Assembly (NCBI GenBank): GCA_048772705.1
Contig: JBLWGC010000009.1
Location: 1 to 6,718, forward strand
DNA: 6,718 nucleotides
Reading direction: 5' to 3'
Source of the DNA: Leidyana gryllorum EB-2025a
Taxonomy: Eukaryota > Protista > Apicomplexa
The stretch's first letter is position 1. Each line of letters starts with the position of its first letter. The position numbers and the translations under genes were made by a program. Positions 1 to 6,718 of the stretch are shown here, in pieces. A model generated the notes under the pieces. The model saw only the letters and a program-made list of their open reading frames with translations. It was not told the DNA's origin and searched no databases.

Positions 1-88
1 GGCGTGTAGTAGATTCAATATGGCGGGGGAGACAGAGACAAAATATTAATCCTTTGAACGTCCAGTTTGCCCCCGTAACTTGACACAG

Positions 89-705
89 ATGCTGGACAGA
101 CTTCGGTCCTTTTTTTTCTCACACTGGGGGCGTGGCGAGGGCATTGCGAACCAGATGCCTGACCTATTGGTATTCACATTTCGTTGTGGGAACGACAATC
201 CTTACTATGACTGTCCTGGTATTGATCAGTGGTATATCCCGCGTCCTCCGATACAGCTTGCCTCAACAGTGGGTGTGGTTGTGGCTTGAAGAAACATTAT
301 GCGCGCTGCGCGATGCTGCTGTTGCTCATTTGACTTTTCTGTGAGTTCGATTGTGGTCTGGTTGAGATTGAGGCTCATAGATTCAAGTGTTTGTCGGTTT
401 GGTGCCTTTATGTATGGGAGCAACGCTGGGCCGCTCTTCCAGACGGAGCTCGCGGTCCTGCAGACGAGAATCCGCCGGGCCTGGATGATGCAGAAAGACT
501 TCTCGCTGATGGAATTCCGCTCCAAACTCGACGTGCGAATGTCCTTACTGAAGTTGAAGTTCTTCGCCGGACAGTGACCAACCTTCAGTTTGCAAACGCA
601 AGAGTCGAGGCTAGATGTATCGAGCTTGAGAGGGAGATTGGAGGCCTGGCGCAAGAAGGTGGTGGACTTCCGCAAAACGGTGATGAGGGCTACGGACGGG
701 GCTAG
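89..705 (+). pseudogene. Gene A copy 1: transmembrane + leucine-zipper protein, frameshifted; join(89..340,381..705)
   Basis: ATG at 89 matches the copy 2 ATG at 3806. The T run at 110-117 has 8 T versus 7 T in copy 2, putting this ATG out of frame with the hydrophobic ORF 132..344. A further 2-nt indel at 682/683 leads to TAG at 703-705. The homopolymer difference could be a sequencing error. Confidence 0.6.
341..380 (+). other. 40-nt spliceosomal intron, gene A copy 1
   Basis: GTGAGT donor and GCTCATAG acceptor. It contains the stop of ORF 132..344, and its removal fuses ...HLTF-L-FKCLSVWCLY in frame with ORF 391..705. Confidence 0.8.
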
Positions 706-735
706 AGATGGAATGAGGCGACCAGGCGAGGGCAC

Positions 736-769
736 GAGGCGGACAACTATTGAGGCGGACAACTATTGA
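736..769 (+). repeat. Perfect 16-bp tandem duplication (GAGGCGGACAACTATT x2), copy 1 only
   Basis: 736..751 is identical to 752..767, followed by GA. Absent from copy 2. Confidence 0.95.
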
Positions 770-787
770 AGTAGCAAGATTGGAGGA

Positions 788-1050
788 ATGAAGGCGGATC
801 CACGGGCACAGGAACCTGCGCGGTCAGGGGACGAGGCGAGAAACGGAAGGCATAAGATAATGTGAGGAAGGGGGACGCCCAGTGCGAGGATTCAGAGCAT
901 TGTGCACTCTGCGCCATGGAGTTATCCGAAACGATTACATCTGCGGACGAAGAGTTGGAGCGTGGTGATATATACCGATTATTTGTATCTTGGAGAAGCG
1001 ACGAGTTCGGTGCCGCGATATCGAGTTCATCACAGCTCTTCCCAGACTGA
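788..1050 (+). pseudogene. Degenerate probable C-terminal tail of gene A, copy 1
   Basis: MKADPRAQEPARSGDEARNG matches the copy 2 repeat peptide ADPPAQGPPRPGNEAIIG. ELSETITSADEELERGDIY matches VLSDSITSPDEELERGDTY with mostly synonymous or conservative changes. Interrupted by stops and indels. Confidence 0.4.
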
Positions 1051-1360
1051 ACGTCAGCCCGGCCTCGAGGACTGACGGAGTTAGTTTAGAGGACTGCAAG
1101 TGTAGTCATCTGTACAGTCAATCGATTGTGTGCCCAGCTTAAATCTATGTTCCATCGCCTTTCGGCTATCAGCCGTAACATCAAGTTGAAAGAAGACTTC
1201 AGAACATGTCACACCCCCCCAACAATATACTGGAATTCAAAATTCCAACTACCTTAGTGACAAAGTGCGAGTTGATTATACTGGAACGATTGATCTGTAC
1301 TCTGCTGACGTCTGATCAGCTGAAATGACCACCGTGACGTTCTGCCAAAGGTGAGAAACA

Positions 1361-1691
1361 ATGGTGTATGGAGTTCTTACCGCTATTCATCCTCAAGCAG
1401 TCGTGGCTAACAGAGTGTACATCGGCAAGGTATACCAACGATTTTTTCTGACGTGCATGAAGTTAACCACCCACATAGTCATCTGCTGACTATCGAAACG
1501 GACGTGCTGCTACTAACTGGGTCTACCAAGGAGACATGAACCACGTTGCTTCGGTTGAGCTCCACGTTGGAATAACCGCACGGAAAGCCATGCGGCATGA
1601 TTGTAAAACATGGCCCGCAAGTTCGTCGAGTCGCCACACGCGTGTGCGCAGAGGACTTCTGCGGTCGTTGGTGCTGAGGAATGCTGAGTGA
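1361..1691 (+). CDS. Possible small spliced ORF/uORF, 93 aa, join(1361..1429,1479..1691), overlapping the F-box start
   Basis: ATG at 1361, AAG|GTATAC donor at 1430, GTTAAC...CATAG acceptor ending at 1478, open to TGA 1689-1691. The same structure is in copy 2. No recognisable domain; it could be 5' UTR. Confidence 0.25.
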
Positions 1692-3665
1692 CCACATCTG
1701 GACTCAAATCCTTCGCTTCCTACCGTTATGGGAACTGACAAGAGTGGCTGGAATCTCCAAACAGATTTACGACATCCTTCACTCAGAAACTTCGTTGTTG
1801 GTCTCGGAGCAACTTTCACTCACGATGACACAGTGGGTCTGGATACACCGGGCGTCGTGGTTCGAAGAATGGCTGCAGCGGTCGTGCCCACATCTAAAAT
1901 CGCTCTTCTGGATCGGAGAGATCAACAAGGATCTCATTGTCATCGATCTATTGCAGAAGATGTGCAAACGGGGTTTACCCAAGTTAAGGAAGGCAACAAT
2001 AGGCGTGACCTTCCCGACTGGGGGATCGTGGCAGTCCCATACTTTCACTTTCCCCACACTGAAGTATCTGGACTTACAATGGTCCGTCTTGTCTGACGGA
2101 CCTCTGCAAATCGACGCACCCATGCTGGAGTTTTTGGCTGTCAACAGGCACAGCCTCCCCTTCATTCGCCACGATTTGGCTGAGACACTCCATCAGGCGG
2201 TGGGCGACGGTCCCGATACCCTCATTATAGCAGTGACAAAGCCACAATTCAAGTATTGGATCTACAGAGTGTGTGATGTCCCCTCTTCTGTAGTGGAGGG
2301 AGGCTGGAAGACGTCCGCCGCTTTGGTGCAATTTTTACCCAGAGCCCCGGATTGGACACGCGATGTGTTGGATTTGCAAAATGAGCGTTCATTCACGTGG
2401 CCAACGTGCGCGAGGTGAGCAATGTTTGAGCCTTCAGTGACATACAGCGCAGGGGGGCACAGAGGCTATTGAACTTTCTCAAAAGAGAATGGTCCGATCG
2501 AGAACGCAATATGCATCCGCTGTGCCGCACCTTTTTACATTCGAAGCCGTATGTGGTATGGCTACGTCCTCAACGGATAGTCAATGAGACCGAAGAAAAT
2601 GGAACTGTGGGTGTGCGGGTGCGTTTAAGCTTGGGATGGTTCCGGTTGGCGCGAACTCGGGATCTGGAGTCCCCCCCTCTCTGGTGGATGGCACTGCCAC
2701 TGACCGAACCGCCCGCTGTATTTCCTCCCACAAACATTGGGTTGGTGACAAATCACACAGCGTATCTGAACGCCACCGGCCTGCATCATGCAGTGGATTG
2801 GTCCGAGGTGACACGGGTTCTCTATGTCAATAACGCTTCCATTCCAACTCTGACCGAAGACTCAATTAGAAGTTTGCCCTTCCGAAGTCTGAAGCGCATC
2901 GAGTTACCTCTGCAGGGTTGGGCACTCACCGCAGCGCTGCTTGAAGACGCGACTTCCCAATTTTGGCTTCCCGATTGTATCCGGGTGCTGTGCCTTCACA
3001 CCGACCGGGATGACTCACCGGAAGCGGTTCGACGATTGATTGAAAGATGTCACATCCAATACGTCGGTGTTACCGGAATACCTTCAAAAACCACAAAGTT
3101 GGTTGATTGGTTTTTGGTTGGCCACTCTATCTGGCGACGGAAAGGCGTGCGTATTCGCTTCGGCCTTCAAGCTGCAGCGCTTCTACAATACCCGTGGCCT
3201 AAGGTCCAATTGGAACTCGTCTCGGGACTCTACACCGATGCCACCCTCCGAGCTATGCTGAAGGACATCGGTTGCTCGGCTGATGAGATCGATGCGTTTC
3301 TGGAGGCTCAATCTGATGACGACAGCGAGGAGTGGCCACGGCTGCGAGAAAAAAGTGTCCGGGCTGAGTCCACTCTCGTCCAAGACACGTATTCCCCCAA
3401 CGTGCCAAAAGTATTCGTCAGTGAGTGGTACTCTGCGATGTTGGAAGCGACATTGGGCGAGGCTCAACCGTCTGTGGGCGGATTATTTGGCCCGATGGCT
3501 TCCCTTTGTTCAGACGATTGGTGGCTGGGCCGTATGTTGCTGGATCAGAGGTTCGCAGAACTGGAATATTTCGATGCTGTTGTGATGTTACCGGCTGTCT
3601 GTCCTTTGAGTCTGCACGAAGAAGTTTCCTCACGAAGCGAGGAGGAGAAGTTGGGGCCCACATAA
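1681..3665 (+). CDS. Gene B copy 1: F-box / LRR-like protein, ~648 aa, join(1681..2414,2453..3665)
   Basis: The N-terminal LSDHIWTQILRFLPLWELTRVAGISKQIYDIL fits the F-box consensus (L-P/S-D/E-x-I-x-x-x-I-L-x-F-L-P-x-x-D/E-L...V/I-S-K). LxxLxL-type repeats follow: CPHLKSLFW, LPKLRKATI, FPTLKYLDL, APMLEFLAV, and in exon 2 FRSLKRIEL and PDCIRVLCL. A 38-nt intron joins the 245-aa and 398-aa ORFs in frame (1947 nt total). Confidence 0.85.
2415..2452 (+). other. 38-nt spliceosomal intron, gene B copy 1
   Basis: AG|GTGAGC donor contains the apparent TGA stop. There is a TGAC branch-like motif and a CGCAG acceptor at 2452. Splicing gives ...PTCAR-GAQRLLNFLKREW. The alternative CAGs at 2447 and 2462 are out of frame. 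Confidence 0.8.
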
Positions 3666-3805
3666 GCGTTCTTTGATGACACGTTTTCGATCACATATGT
3701 GTGTTAGTATTATTGGTGGCGTGTAGTAGATTCAATATGGCGGGGGAGACAGAGACAAAATATTAATCCTTTGAACGTCCAGTTTGCCCCCGTAACTTGA
3801 CACAG

Positions 3806-4484
3806 ATGCTGGACAGACTTCGGTCCTTTTTTTCTCACACTCGGGGCCTGGCGAGGGCATTGCGAACCAGATTCCTGACCTATTGGTATTCACATTTCGT
3901 TGTGGGAACGACAATCCTTACTATGACTGTCCTGGTATTGATCAGTGGTATATCCCGCGTCCTCCGATACAGCTTGCCTCAAAAGTGGGTGTGGTTGTGG
4001 TTGGAAGAAATAGTATGCGCGCTGCGCGATGCTACTGTTGCTCATTTGACTTTTCTGTGAGTTCGATTGTGGTCTGGTTGAGATTGAGGCTCATAGATTC
4101 AAGTGTTTGTCGGTTTGGTGCCTTTATGTATGGGAGCAACGCTGGGCCGCTCTTCCAGACGGAGCTCGCGGTCCTGCAGACGAGAATCCGCCGGGCCTGG
4201 ATGATGCAGAAAGACTTCTCGCTGATGGAATTCCGCTCCAAACTCGACGTGCGAATGTCCTTACTGAAGTTGAAGTTCTTCGCCGGACAGTGACCAACCT
4301 TCAGTTTGCAAACGCAAGAGTCGAGGCTAGATGTATCGAGCTTGAGAGGGAGATTGGAGGCCTGGACGAGGAAGGCGGTCAACTTCCGCGAAACGGTGGT
4401 ATGAGGACTGCGGACGGGGCGATAAACGGAGGCATGCGGATCCACCGGCCCAGGGGCCTCCGCGGCCAGGGAACGAGGCGATAA
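3806..4484 (+). CDS. Gene A copy 2: Arg-rich N-terminus + transmembrane segment(s) + leucine zipper, 212 aa, join(3806..4056,4097..4484)
   Basis: Continuous 639-nt frame after removing a 40-nt GTGAGT..TAG intron. Hydrophobic FVVGTTILTMTVLVLISGI, a second hydrophobic stretch VAHLTFLFKCLSVWCLYVW spanning the splice junction, and a heptad repeat at 4257-4364. No family recognised. Confidence 0.7.
4057..4096 (+). other. 40-nt spliceosomal intron, gene A copy 2
   Basis: Identical to 341..380. Joins ORF 3797..4060 to ORF 4107..4484 in frame. Confidence 0.8.
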
Positions 4485-4555
4485 TCGGGGTGGTGGCGGA
4501 TCCACCGGCACAGCAATGTCCGCGGCCAGGGAACGTGGTCTTAAAACGAAGGCAT
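4436..4555 (+). repeat. Imperfect 60-bp tandem repeat (2 units; one related unit at ~794..847 in copy 1)
   Basis: GCGGATCCACCGGC starts at 4436 and at 4496, each followed by TCCGCGGCCAGGGAACG at the same spacing. The period is a multiple of 3. Confidence 0.9.
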
Positions 4556-5068
4556 CAGGTAGTGGGAGGAAGGGGACGCCGGGTGCGAGGATTCGGAACA
4601 TTGTACACTCTGCTCAACGGAGTGCTATCCGATTCGATCACATCGCCGGACGAAGAGTTGGAGCGTGGTGATACATACTGATTATATATATCTTGGAGAA
4701 GCGACGAGTTCGGTGCCGCGATAGCGACTTCATCACAGCTCTTCCCAGACTGGACGTCAGCCCGGCCCTGACGACTGACGGAGTTAGTTTAGAGGATTGC
4801 AAGTGTAGTCATCTGTACAGTCAATCGATTGTGTACCCTTGCCCAGCTTAAAAATGCGTTGGATCGCTCTTTGGCCATCAGCCGTATCATCAAGTTGATA
4901 GAAGACTTTAGAACATGTCATACCCCGCCAACATACTGGGATTCAAAATTCCGACTGCCTTAGTGACAAAGTGCGGGTTTCTTCAAACGGTAACAATTGA
5001 TTCTGGACTCTGCTGGTCTCAAATCAGCTGAAATCGCCACCGTGACGTGCTGCCAAAGGTGAGAAGCA

Positions 5069-5399
5069 ATGGTGCATGGAGTTCTTACCGCTCTTCATGC
5101 TCAAGCAGTCGTGGCTAACAGAGTGTACATCGGCAAGGTATACCAACGATTTTTTCTGACGTGCATGAAGTTAACCACCCACATAGTCATCTGCTGACTA
5201 TCGAAACGGACGTGCTGCTACTAACTGGGTCTACCAAGGAGACATGAACCACGTTGCTTCGGTTGAGCTCCACGTTGGAATAACCGCACGGAAAGCCATG
5301 CGGCATGATTGTAAAACATGGCCCGCAAGTTCGTCGAGTCGTCACACGCGTGTGCGCAGAGGACTTCTGCGGTCGTTGGTGCTGAAGAATGCTGAGTGA
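5069..5399 (+). CDS. Possible small spliced ORF/uORF, copy 2, join(5069..5137,5187..5399)
   Basis: Same ATG, splice signals and stop as 1361..1691. The exon 2 differences are CGC>CGT (silent) and AGG>AAG (R>K). Confidence 0.25.
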
Positions 5400-6718
5400 C
5401 CACATCTGGACTCAAATCCTTCGCTTCCTACCGTTATGGGAACTGACAAGAGTGGCTGGAATCTCCAAACAGATTTACGACATTCTTCACTCAGAAACTT
5501 CGTTGTTGGTCTCGGAGCAACTTTCACTCACGAGGACACAATGGGCCTGGGTACACCGGGCGTCGTGGTTTGAAGGATGGCTGCACCGGTCGTGCCCACA
5601 TCTGGAATCGCTCTCTTGGATTGGAGAGATCAACAAGGATCTCATTGTCATCGATCTATTGCAGAAGATGTGCAAACGGGGTTTACCAAAGCTAACGAAG
5701 GCAGCAATAGGTGTGACCTTTCCGACTGGGGGATCGTGGCAGTCCCATACTTTCACTTTCCCCACACTGAAGTATCTGAACTTACAATGGTCCGTCTTGT
5801 CTGACGGACCTCTGCAAATCGACGCACCCATGCTGGAGTTTTTGGCTGTCAACAGGCACAGCCTCCCCTTCATTCGCCACGATTTGGCTGAGACGCTCCA
5901 TCAGGCGGTGGGCGACGGCCCCGATGCCCTCATTATAGCAGTGACAAAGCCACAATTCAAGTATTGGATCTACAGACTGTGGGACGTCCCCTCTTCTGTA
6001 GTGGAAGGAGGCTGGAAGACGTCCGCCTCTTTGGTGCCATCGTTACCCACAGCCCCGGATTGGACACGCGATGTGTTGGATTTGCAAAATGAGCCTTCAT
6101 TCACGTGGCCAACGTGCGCGAGGTGAGCAATGTTTGAGCCTTTGATGACACACAGCGCAGGGGGGCACAGAGGCTATTGAAATATCTCAAGAGAGAATGG
6201 TCCGACCGAGAACGCAATATGCATCCGCTGTGTCGCACATTTCTACATTTGAGGTCGTGTGCGGTACGGCTACATCCTCAACGGATAGTCAATGAGACCG
6301 TAGGAAATGGAACTTTGGGTGTGCGGGTGCGTTCAAGCGTGGGATGGTTCCGGTTGGCGCGAACTCGGGATTTGGAGTCCCCGCCTCTGCGGTGGAAGGC
6401 ACTGCCACTGACCGAACCGCCCGCTGTATTTCCTCCCACAAACATTGGGTTGGTGGCAAATCACACAGCGTATCTGAACGCCACCGGCCTGCATCATGCA
6501 GTGGATTGGTCCGAGGTGACACGGGTTCTCTATGTCAATAACGCTTCCATTCCAACTCTGACCGAAGACTCAATTAGAAGTTTGCCCTTCCGAAGTCTGA
6601 AGCGCATCGAGTTACCTCTGCAGGGTTGGGCACTCACCGCAGCGCTGCTTGAAGACGCGACTCCCCAATTTTGGCTTCCCGATTGTATCCGGGTGCTGTG
6701 CCTACACACCGACCGAGA
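5389..6718 (+). CDS. Gene B copy 2: F-box / LRR-like protein, 3'-partial, join(5389..6122,6161..>6718)
   Basis: Paralog of 1681..3665. Exon 1 differs at 18 of 245 residues. Exon 2 (GAQRLLKYLKREWSDRERNMHPLCRTFLH...) is open to the window end and is absent from the ORF track, presumably because it has no stop. Confidence 0.85.
6123..6160 (+). other. 38-nt spliceosomal intron, gene B copy 2
   Basis: The GTGAGC donor, TGAC motif, CGCAG acceptor and length are all conserved, while internal positions differ from copy 1. Confidence 0.8.

Follow-up and report, generated by a model that had tools for sequence, protein, structure and literature searches.

A tandemly amplified gene pair in the gregarine Leidyana gryllorum: a fast-evolving membrane-zipper gene alternating with a probable F-box adaptor gene

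Results and discussion

The stretch of DNA analysed here (the window) is the complete contig JBLWGC010000009.1 (hereafter C9; 6,718 nucleotides, ~6.7 kb) of the apicomplexan Leidyana gryllorum EB-2025a, within a 15.5-Mb assembly of 237 contigs (GCA_048772705.1), and it carries 1.8 copies of a 3.7-kb unit in which a small gene for a predicted membrane protein with a leucine zipper (gene A) is followed each time by a gene for a probable F-box protein (gene B). Weighing the gene structures, arrays, linkage, substitution rates and lesions that we observed in this window and across the genome, we judge it somewhat probable that the two-gene unit was amplified by unequal crossing-over and that A is a real gene for a membrane-zipper protein, evolving fast and requiring no biochemical link with B. 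What is new here is that A appears to be the genome-wide, position-conserved partner of one large B subfamily, evolving too fast for sequence searches to follow and apparently lost once.

A two-gene unit repeated in tandem

The direct repeat in C9 has a period of 3717 bp, falling to 3716-3701 past small insertions or deletions (indels), and its two copies are 92% identical overall, with positions 1-116 matching 3718-3833 at 100% and the remaining blocks matching at 84-97%. Because the copies are sufficiently different from each other, the repeat is not an echo of the assembly. The repeat and the parts of it discussed below are as follows.

1-3717, + strand: tandem unit copy 1, holding A copy 1, the spacer, B copy 1 and 52 bp past the B stop (3717-bp direct repeat; 92% identity to copy 2).
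3718-6718, + strand: tandem unit copy 2, truncated by the contig end at unit position ~3010 (direct repeat).
319-649, identical to 4035-4365, + strand: 331-bp identity tract running from late in A exon 1 across the intron and through the zipper (longest identical run between the copies, at a shift of 3716).

The B stop ends at 3665 and the next A start codon lies at 3806, so that 140 bp intervene, as an initial annotation made from the letters of the window had stated, and the other gap, from A to B, is ~900 bp. That annotation had also proposed a tandem two-gene module, and this is confirmed both by the repeat in C9 and by the further arrays found across the genome. The 331-bp tract suggests gene conversion between the copies, and the sequence flanking it has diverged by 3-10%.

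Gene A: a predicted membrane helix and a leucine zipper

Each exon was analysed on its own throughout, in searches, structure models, alignments and rate counts alike, which places the following parts of gene A in the window.

89-705, + strand: gene A copy 1, broken; exon 1 89-340, intron 341-380, exon 2 381-705 (four-copy alignment; list of open reading frames).
3806-4484, + strand: gene A copy 2, intact; exon 1 3806-4056, 40-nt phase-2 intron 4057-4096, exon 2 4097-4484 (open reading frames, the spacer-model detector described below, codon usage).
3887-3955, + strand: first membrane helix predicted in A copy 2, ~residues 28-50 of exon 1 (hydrophobicity of the translated exon).
4236-4364, + strand: leucine zipper of A copy 2, exon 2 residues 47-89 (heptad reading; helix in the AlphaFold2 model).
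4435-4575, + strand: 60-nt tandem repeat in the variable tail of A copy 2, extending beyond the A stop at 4484 (repeat family D4; alignment).

The exon translations of A copy 2 come to 83 and 128 residues, and the codon-usage score of this copy is positive in the annotated frame only. A copy 1 is frameshifted by one additional base in a T run at 110-117, relative both to copy 2 and to the copy on another contig (C33), and its tail is shorter than and unlike that of copy 2, with a single unit at 793-873 as the counterpart of the 60-nt repeat. Of the earlier picture of an open B beside a lesioned A, then, the open B stands for both C9 copies and the lesion for A copy 1, but A copy 2 is intact.

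Exon 1 opens with an arginine-rich segment, after which comes one clear predicted membrane helix, and a second hydrophobic stretch appears, by eye in the separate exon translations, to span the exon junction, where it is split by the intron. Exon 2 carries leucine or valine at the d positions of seven heptads (L47, V54, L61, L68, V75, L82 and L89), with R, V, V, N, C and I at the a positions, and its AlphaFold2 (AF2) model contains a 46-residue helix at 47-92 with a predicted local distance difference test (pLDDT) of 75-86, followed by a disordered tail. Judged by hydrophobic a and d positions over at least four heptads in a continuous, here predicted, helix, gene A has a leucine zipper or coiled coil, and as modelled the zipper resembles the classic dimer type. 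The identical zipper sequence occurs at 520-648 in A copy 1. The membrane helix and the coiled coil first read from the letters alone therefore hold up as a predicted helix and a seven-heptad zipper. For A, Pfam returned nothing beyond sub-threshold coiled-coil noise, with the exon 2 of one paralogue matching coiled-coil families only; a word-index search of a 5.8-billion-protein collection found no match to A exon 2, and the best of its ESM Atlas look-alikes scored 0.86, below the meaningful level.

Gene B: a probable F-box adaptor with an orphan C-terminal domain

1681-3665, + strand: gene B copy 1; exon 1 1681-2414, 38-nt GT..AG intron 2415-2452, exon 2 2453-3665 (open reading frames, Pfam, AF2, alignment).
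5389-6718, + strand: gene B copy 2; exon 1 5389-6122, intron 6123-6160, exon 2 from 6161 to the contig end (open reading frames, Pfam).

Both copies are open with no stop, copy 2 as far as the contig end. Exon 1 encodes an F-box-like start and a region of strand/helix repeats, and exon 2 a domain without a Pfam match. The first 35 residues are nearly invariant among 13 paralogues, and Pfam aligned residues 2-36 to positions 4-38 of the PF00646 profile at E 0.0019 and 18.5 bits, which is below the cut-off of 20.5, with further matches to PF12937 (E 0.008) and to the leucine-rich repeat (LRR) family LRR_At5g56370 (E 0.09-0.14). In the AF2 model of exon 1 (pLDDT 66, predicted template modelling score 0.69), helices at 4-13, 16-22 and 27-33 lead into a region where strands alternate with helices, and the pLDDT over the F-box part is only ~50. 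Structure comparison by Foldseek listed COI1-ASK1, FBXL3, KDM2A-SKP1, Skp2 and Dia2 only at E 0.2-1.6, and a profile search of the PDB listed TLR4 and internalin C only at E 0.23-0.86, none of these being significant. B exon 2 had no relative outside this genome in the word-index protein search. A single Skp1 gene is present in the genome (C230:901522-901665, E 3e-25).

Reading these features together, we regard B as a probable substrate adaptor of the F-box type for an SCF (Skp1-cullin-F-box) ubiquitin ligase, with an LRR-like middle and an orphan C-terminal domain. The F-box/LRR identity originally given to B is thus retained as probable for its invariant F-box-like start and its LRR-like middle, but the Pfam, Foldseek and PDB matches all stay below threshold.

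A and B across the genome

The B family has more than 40 DNA matches in the genome and at least 83 exon-1 protein matches, 36 of them full-length at no less than 54% identity, and it forms tandem runs on many contigs with periods of ~2.65, 3.3, 3.5, 3.6-3.7 and 4.1 kb. Direct searches with A recover its own clade only: both C9 copies, one on C33 interrupted by a TGA stop, and a decayed one where C213 begins. Further arrays carry genes built in this way in their spacers. A detector for two-exon A models (requiring a Kyte-Doolittle hydrophobicity of at least 1.7, among other features) fired in 7 of 30 spacers on the B strand, compared with none of 30 on the other strand and none of 600 shuffles. 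On C230, two spacers of the array hold intact A-build genes and two more hold decayed versions; the intact ones start 137 bp past the B stop and have a membrane helix, a 40-nt phase-2 intron of similar sequence and a coiled-coil exon. Others lie on C186 (four copies), C136 and C202, with phase-2 introns of 37-41 nt. Common to all is a start 137-185 bp past the upstream B stop (where one is present), a membrane helix in exon 1, a phase-2 intron of 37-41 nt and a coiled-coil exon 2. When trained on B, the codon-usage score came out positive in the annotated frame for all 12 A exons tested.

A profile of A-like sequences additionally recovered a copy on C102 that was absent from the profile (E 1.6e-14 and 2.8e-9), which has one TAG stop and a B fragment 620 bp downstream, and remnants of A lie on C2 and C47. 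In direct and profile searches of the genome, no A-like gene stood apart from a B gene or fragment; search tables alone were the basis for the C102 locus, for what lies upstream of the head copies on C136 and C202, and for C204, C205 and the rest of the C47 arrays. The initial annotation had suggested checking whether A always co-occurs with B: each detectable A-like gene does adjoin a B gene or fragment, and the converse fails, with nine sampled B genes having no A. It had also considered that there might be just two copies, as in an ordinary segmental duplication, which is not so given the A-build genes in several arrays.

Divergence of A between arrays is extreme, and the peptide repeats of exon 2 vary from array to array. 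One C230 copy has ~17 residues repeated 3-4 times (L022:9009-9566, minus strand), and a C202 copy has exact 7-residue heptads (QRIATLE-like) at least six times over (L070:2977-3345, minus strand). Paired cysteines (CC) stand just past the second hydrophobic stretch in three out of four A copies compared from C186, C136, C202 and C47.

The arrays themselves are variously placed. C213:1-3470 begins inside an A tail that resembles the one of C9 copy 2 and continues with the spacer, an intact B (92% identical) and a decayed A (start deleted, TAA stop); C9 and C213 are probably one array split by the assembler. On C33, within a 318-kb contig, a partial unit at 126719-129085 (minus strand) holds the last 913 bp of B, an A with a TGA stop and the spacer to unit position 1437, and is 90-97% identical to C9. 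By its sequence, this insert looks to be a recent dispersed copy whose ends disregard gene borders. On C186 (92 kb), B-A arrays occupy both ends, inverted and pointing inward (270-6712, plus strand; 85608-92067, minus strand), and all four A copies are open. The phase of the arrays is arbitrary, such that the C230 array starts with a B adjoining an unrelated gene and ends with a dead A, and the C136 and C202 arrays have A first, with no close B match reported upstream. Genes of ordinary appearance flank the C230 array (773532-775300 and 759000-760000), with a Brix-domain-like open reading frame at one end and a phosphoribosyltransferase-like one at the other, as read by eye from translations.

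Decay, substitution rates and phylogeny

The lesions of gene A comprise the frameshift in C9 copy 1, the TGA in C33, the deletion and TAA in C213 and the TAG in C102, with remnants only in C2, so that about half of the A copies are dead; intact, spliced frames are found in five lineages (C9, C230, C186, C136 and C202). Full-length B was checked in 13 copies (C9, C213, C2 and C230), of which 12 are open. The exception heads the C230 array (C230:771401-772593, minus strand), where the match is split near the 3' end, suggesting a frameshift or indel. In the C2 array every B copy is open while A is present as remnants only.

Rates of non-synonymous (dN) and synonymous (dS) substitution were as follows.

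A within the C9 clade: dN/dS 1.05-1.72 (Nei-Gojobori, summed over exons; counts for A copy 1 begin past the frameshift site).
A, two intact C230 copies: dN/dS 0.81 (Nei-Gojobori).
B, same unit pairs: dN/dS 0.26-0.67.
B, between arrays: dN/dS 0.24-0.50.
A, C9 versus C230: dN 0.76-0.94 (alignments are uncertain at such distance and inflate dN).
B, C9 versus C230: dS 0.58-0.71.

Because dN of A equals or exceeds dS of B in the comparison of C9 with C230, the amino-acid sites of A evolve at about the neutral pace or faster. By our own estimate, 170-250 codons free of constraint would gain several stops over such divergence, and since spliced A frames survive in five lineages despite those expected stops, we infer that selection on A keeps an open frame and a general architecture and acts almost not at all on the exact sequence.

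A maximum likelihood tree was built from 29 B exon-1 sequences. Nine sampled B copies from the 2.65-kb arrays (C36, C173, C121 and C133) form one clade with 100/100 support, and no A model was detected in the spacers of these four arrays. With midpoint rooting, these nine fall within a set of clades that bear A. A single event, be it loss or gain, would explain the distribution of A whatever the root, and the simplest reading of the tree is that the A-B unit is ancestral and that A was lost once.

Origin of the pair and possible roles of A

The explanation that we favour, and hold to be somewhat probable, begins with an A-B unit that would have originated before this B subfamily diversified. 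Unequal crossing-over would then have multiplied the unit, with gene conversion homogenising copies locally, and units may have been seeded at new loci as multi-gene pieces that ignore gene borders, as the C33 insert would exemplify. With many copies present, A could have become loosely constrained, keeping its open frame, membrane helix, intron and coiled-coil character, and one B clade may have lost A entirely. The constant adjacency of A and B would reflect their shared duplication history, and linkage alone therefore says little about function; we infer that A has its own function and is linked to B without requiring any biochemical coupling between the two.

Several observations weigh against this explanation. 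Common descent of the C9/C230-type and the C186/C136/C202-type A would follow from position, intron phase and length, and architecture, and it has no sequence support, as profile-profile alignment of the two types (hhalign) gave E 0.37 and 0.061, neither being significant. Intact A is found in five lineages while the B protein has diverged by 25-40%; were A a redundant passenger, fewer lineages should have kept it, and this hints that some lineages need A, possibly in a way tied to the adjacent B. The conserved distance of 137-185 bp from B stop to A start may point to shared transcription. Every intact A that was seen has an intact B next to it, and the two cases with a B fragment (C33 and C102) both have a dead A.

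The last of these points also bears on the reading that comes closest, by which A and B are cognate partners, with A as the target, regulator or membrane tether of the adjacent B and with arrays that diversify matched pairs. We consider this possible, though rather doubtful. It would account for each A-like gene found adjoining a B gene or fragment, for the retention of intact A in five B lineages over long divergence and for the conserved spacing from B to A. It is consistent as well with the diversifying patches of B (dN/dS up to 0.67) beside a highly variable A, and with the presence of Skp1 in the genome. Decay always takes the form of a dead A with B kept and never of an intact A without B, which is what a poison-antidote pair predicts, and by their alternation A and B form two tightly linked genes that travel as a unit, the linkage looked for in toxin-antidote systems.

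Linkage is, however, the default result of duplicating a unit that holds both genes. Among the close B genes sampled, at least nine lack A, and on C2 B is open where A is ruined; given this A-less clade and the open C2 genes, B is independent of A. Together with the near-neutral rate of A, these same observations are fitted equally well by co-duplication. Nor does A carry a signal of purifying or of clear positive selection, and its zipper only presumably faces the cytosol. Complex prediction with three chains (the two B exons and A exon 2) gave a score of 0.00 with the fold of the partner itself uncertain, and so does not speak to binding in either direction. Toxin-antidote elements are known as one linked pair showing presence/absence polymorphism (PMC3144186) and are not known as arrays of more than 10 pairs. 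That the matched pairs co-diversify as a recognition, incompatibility or poison-antidote system, in which each adaptor would restrain or remove its neighbouring A variant only, is improbable in our estimation, and the toxin-antidote case within the cognate-partner reading is very improbable.

It is also unlikely that A no longer is, or never was, a working gene, its copies being either relics of one ancestral gene that decay within the spacer or non-coding sequence belonging to the B transcription unit. Such relics would be expected to have a dN/dS of ~1 in all close comparisons, as A does, and the non-synonymous divergence of A at or above the synonymous divergence of B, the frameshifts, stops or deletions in about half of the copies, the lack of relatives in the 5.8-billion-protein search and the mere 140 bp between B stop and A start all agree with them. 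They would not explain why open two-exon models, with their canonical splice sites, shared intron phase and membrane helix, persist where the spacers no longer align, why the detector controls were blank on all 600 shuffles and 30 reverse strands, why heptad periodicity is preserved in differing sequences (the C9 zipper and the exact 7-residue repeats in C202) or why, for 11 of 12 exons, codon usage speaks for the frame as annotated.

Quite improbable is an A that serves as a variable surface or secreted-pathway membrane protein of an antigen-like family, with a role unrelated to B and an expansion in the same recombination-prone arrays, for although an N-terminal membrane helix, length-variable repeat tails (60 nt in C9, 17 residues in C230, 7 residues in C202) and extreme divergence between arrays would suit it, the second hydrophobic stretch (seen by eye) and the CC pairs in three of those four copies suggest a hairpin with a cytosolic tail, and such a role overlaps our favoured amplification of a working A gene instead of excluding it.

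Comparison with known systems

Set beside the F-box expansions of Caenorhabditis and plants (PMC8120010, PMC8665587), the B family is similar in its dozens of arrayed genes, its conserved docking end with variable, putatively target-binding parts and its birth-and-death turnover. It differs in its apicomplexan host, in a C-terminal domain without a known relative and in that a large part of the family alternates with an unrelated small membrane-zipper gene. Our full-text literature search returned no paper reporting an F-box expansion in gregarines.

The peel-1/zeel-1 element of Caenorhabditis resembles the A-B unit in that a gene for a small membrane protein is tightly linked to one related to ubiquitin-ligase adaptors and drawn from an expanded adaptor family, and the initial annotation had invoked it as a precedent for ligase-type detoxification. 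The precedent is weaker than that and does not show such detoxification, as the antidote activity of ZEEL-1 resides in its membrane domain and its soluble, ligase-adaptor-like domain alone gives no rescue (PMC3144186). The systems differ further in that PEEL-1 forms a cation channel together with PMPL-1, that ZEEL-1 is itself a six-pass membrane protein, and that peel-1/zeel-1 is one pair with presence/absence polymorphism, compared with the many arrays here, where A-B is known from sequence alone. Sequence similarity between that element and A-B is neither claimed nor found.

Self-incompatibility by S-RNase and S-locus F-box (SLF) genes in plants offers another comparison, in that the F-box genes there presumably detoxify the product of a linked gene while their specificities diversify. 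It has, however, one secreted RNase and many SLF genes per haplotype, whereas A and B stand at ~1:1 and the partner is a membrane zipper protein. Apicomplexans also have multigene families in tandem or at contig ends, with fast-evolving, repeat-bearing small membrane proteins, recombination-prone arrays and many pseudogenes; to our knowledge none of these alternates gene by gene with F-box genes.

The alternation of an adaptor with an orphan membrane-zipper gene provides a concrete candidate for what some adaptors act on or travel with. A gene family united by position, intron and architecture while its sequence lies beyond the reach of profiles is also a warning for counts of orphan genes in parasites. 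If the pairs were cognate, they would amount to a multi-copy recognition or selfish system in a group without a known example.

Spacer elements and other features of the window

A check of the starts of array-bearing contigs found no telomere repeats, and an Rfam search of the C9 window returned nothing. Two elements of the spacer between A and B recur in other arrays.

1092-1108 and, with one mismatch, 4795-4811, + strand: 17-nt near-palindrome GACTGCAAGTGTAGTCA (genome motif count).
1516-1680, + strand: conserved 165 bp preceding the B start codon (comparison with the C230 and C2 arrays).

The near-palindrome has 26 matches in the genome at up to two mismatches, compared with 2 for the reversed control; of these 26 matches, 22 map to B-array coordinates and share the strand of B. 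Besides C9, the contigs concerned are C121, C133, C36, C173, C2, C213, C33, C202, C47 and C230. Where measured (C9, C230, C2 and C121) it stands ~530-650 bp ahead of the B start, and it is found too in arrays without gene A, making it a candidate regulatory or termination element of the unit. The 165 bp ahead of B are 71-74% identical to the equivalent position on C230, and a shorter part (from 1547 or 1582) is 72-75% identical on C2, while the remaining spacer beyond them is barely alignable with the C230 and C2 arrays. From this pattern of conservation, positions 1516-1680 are probably a B promoter or 5' untranslated region rather than a third gene.

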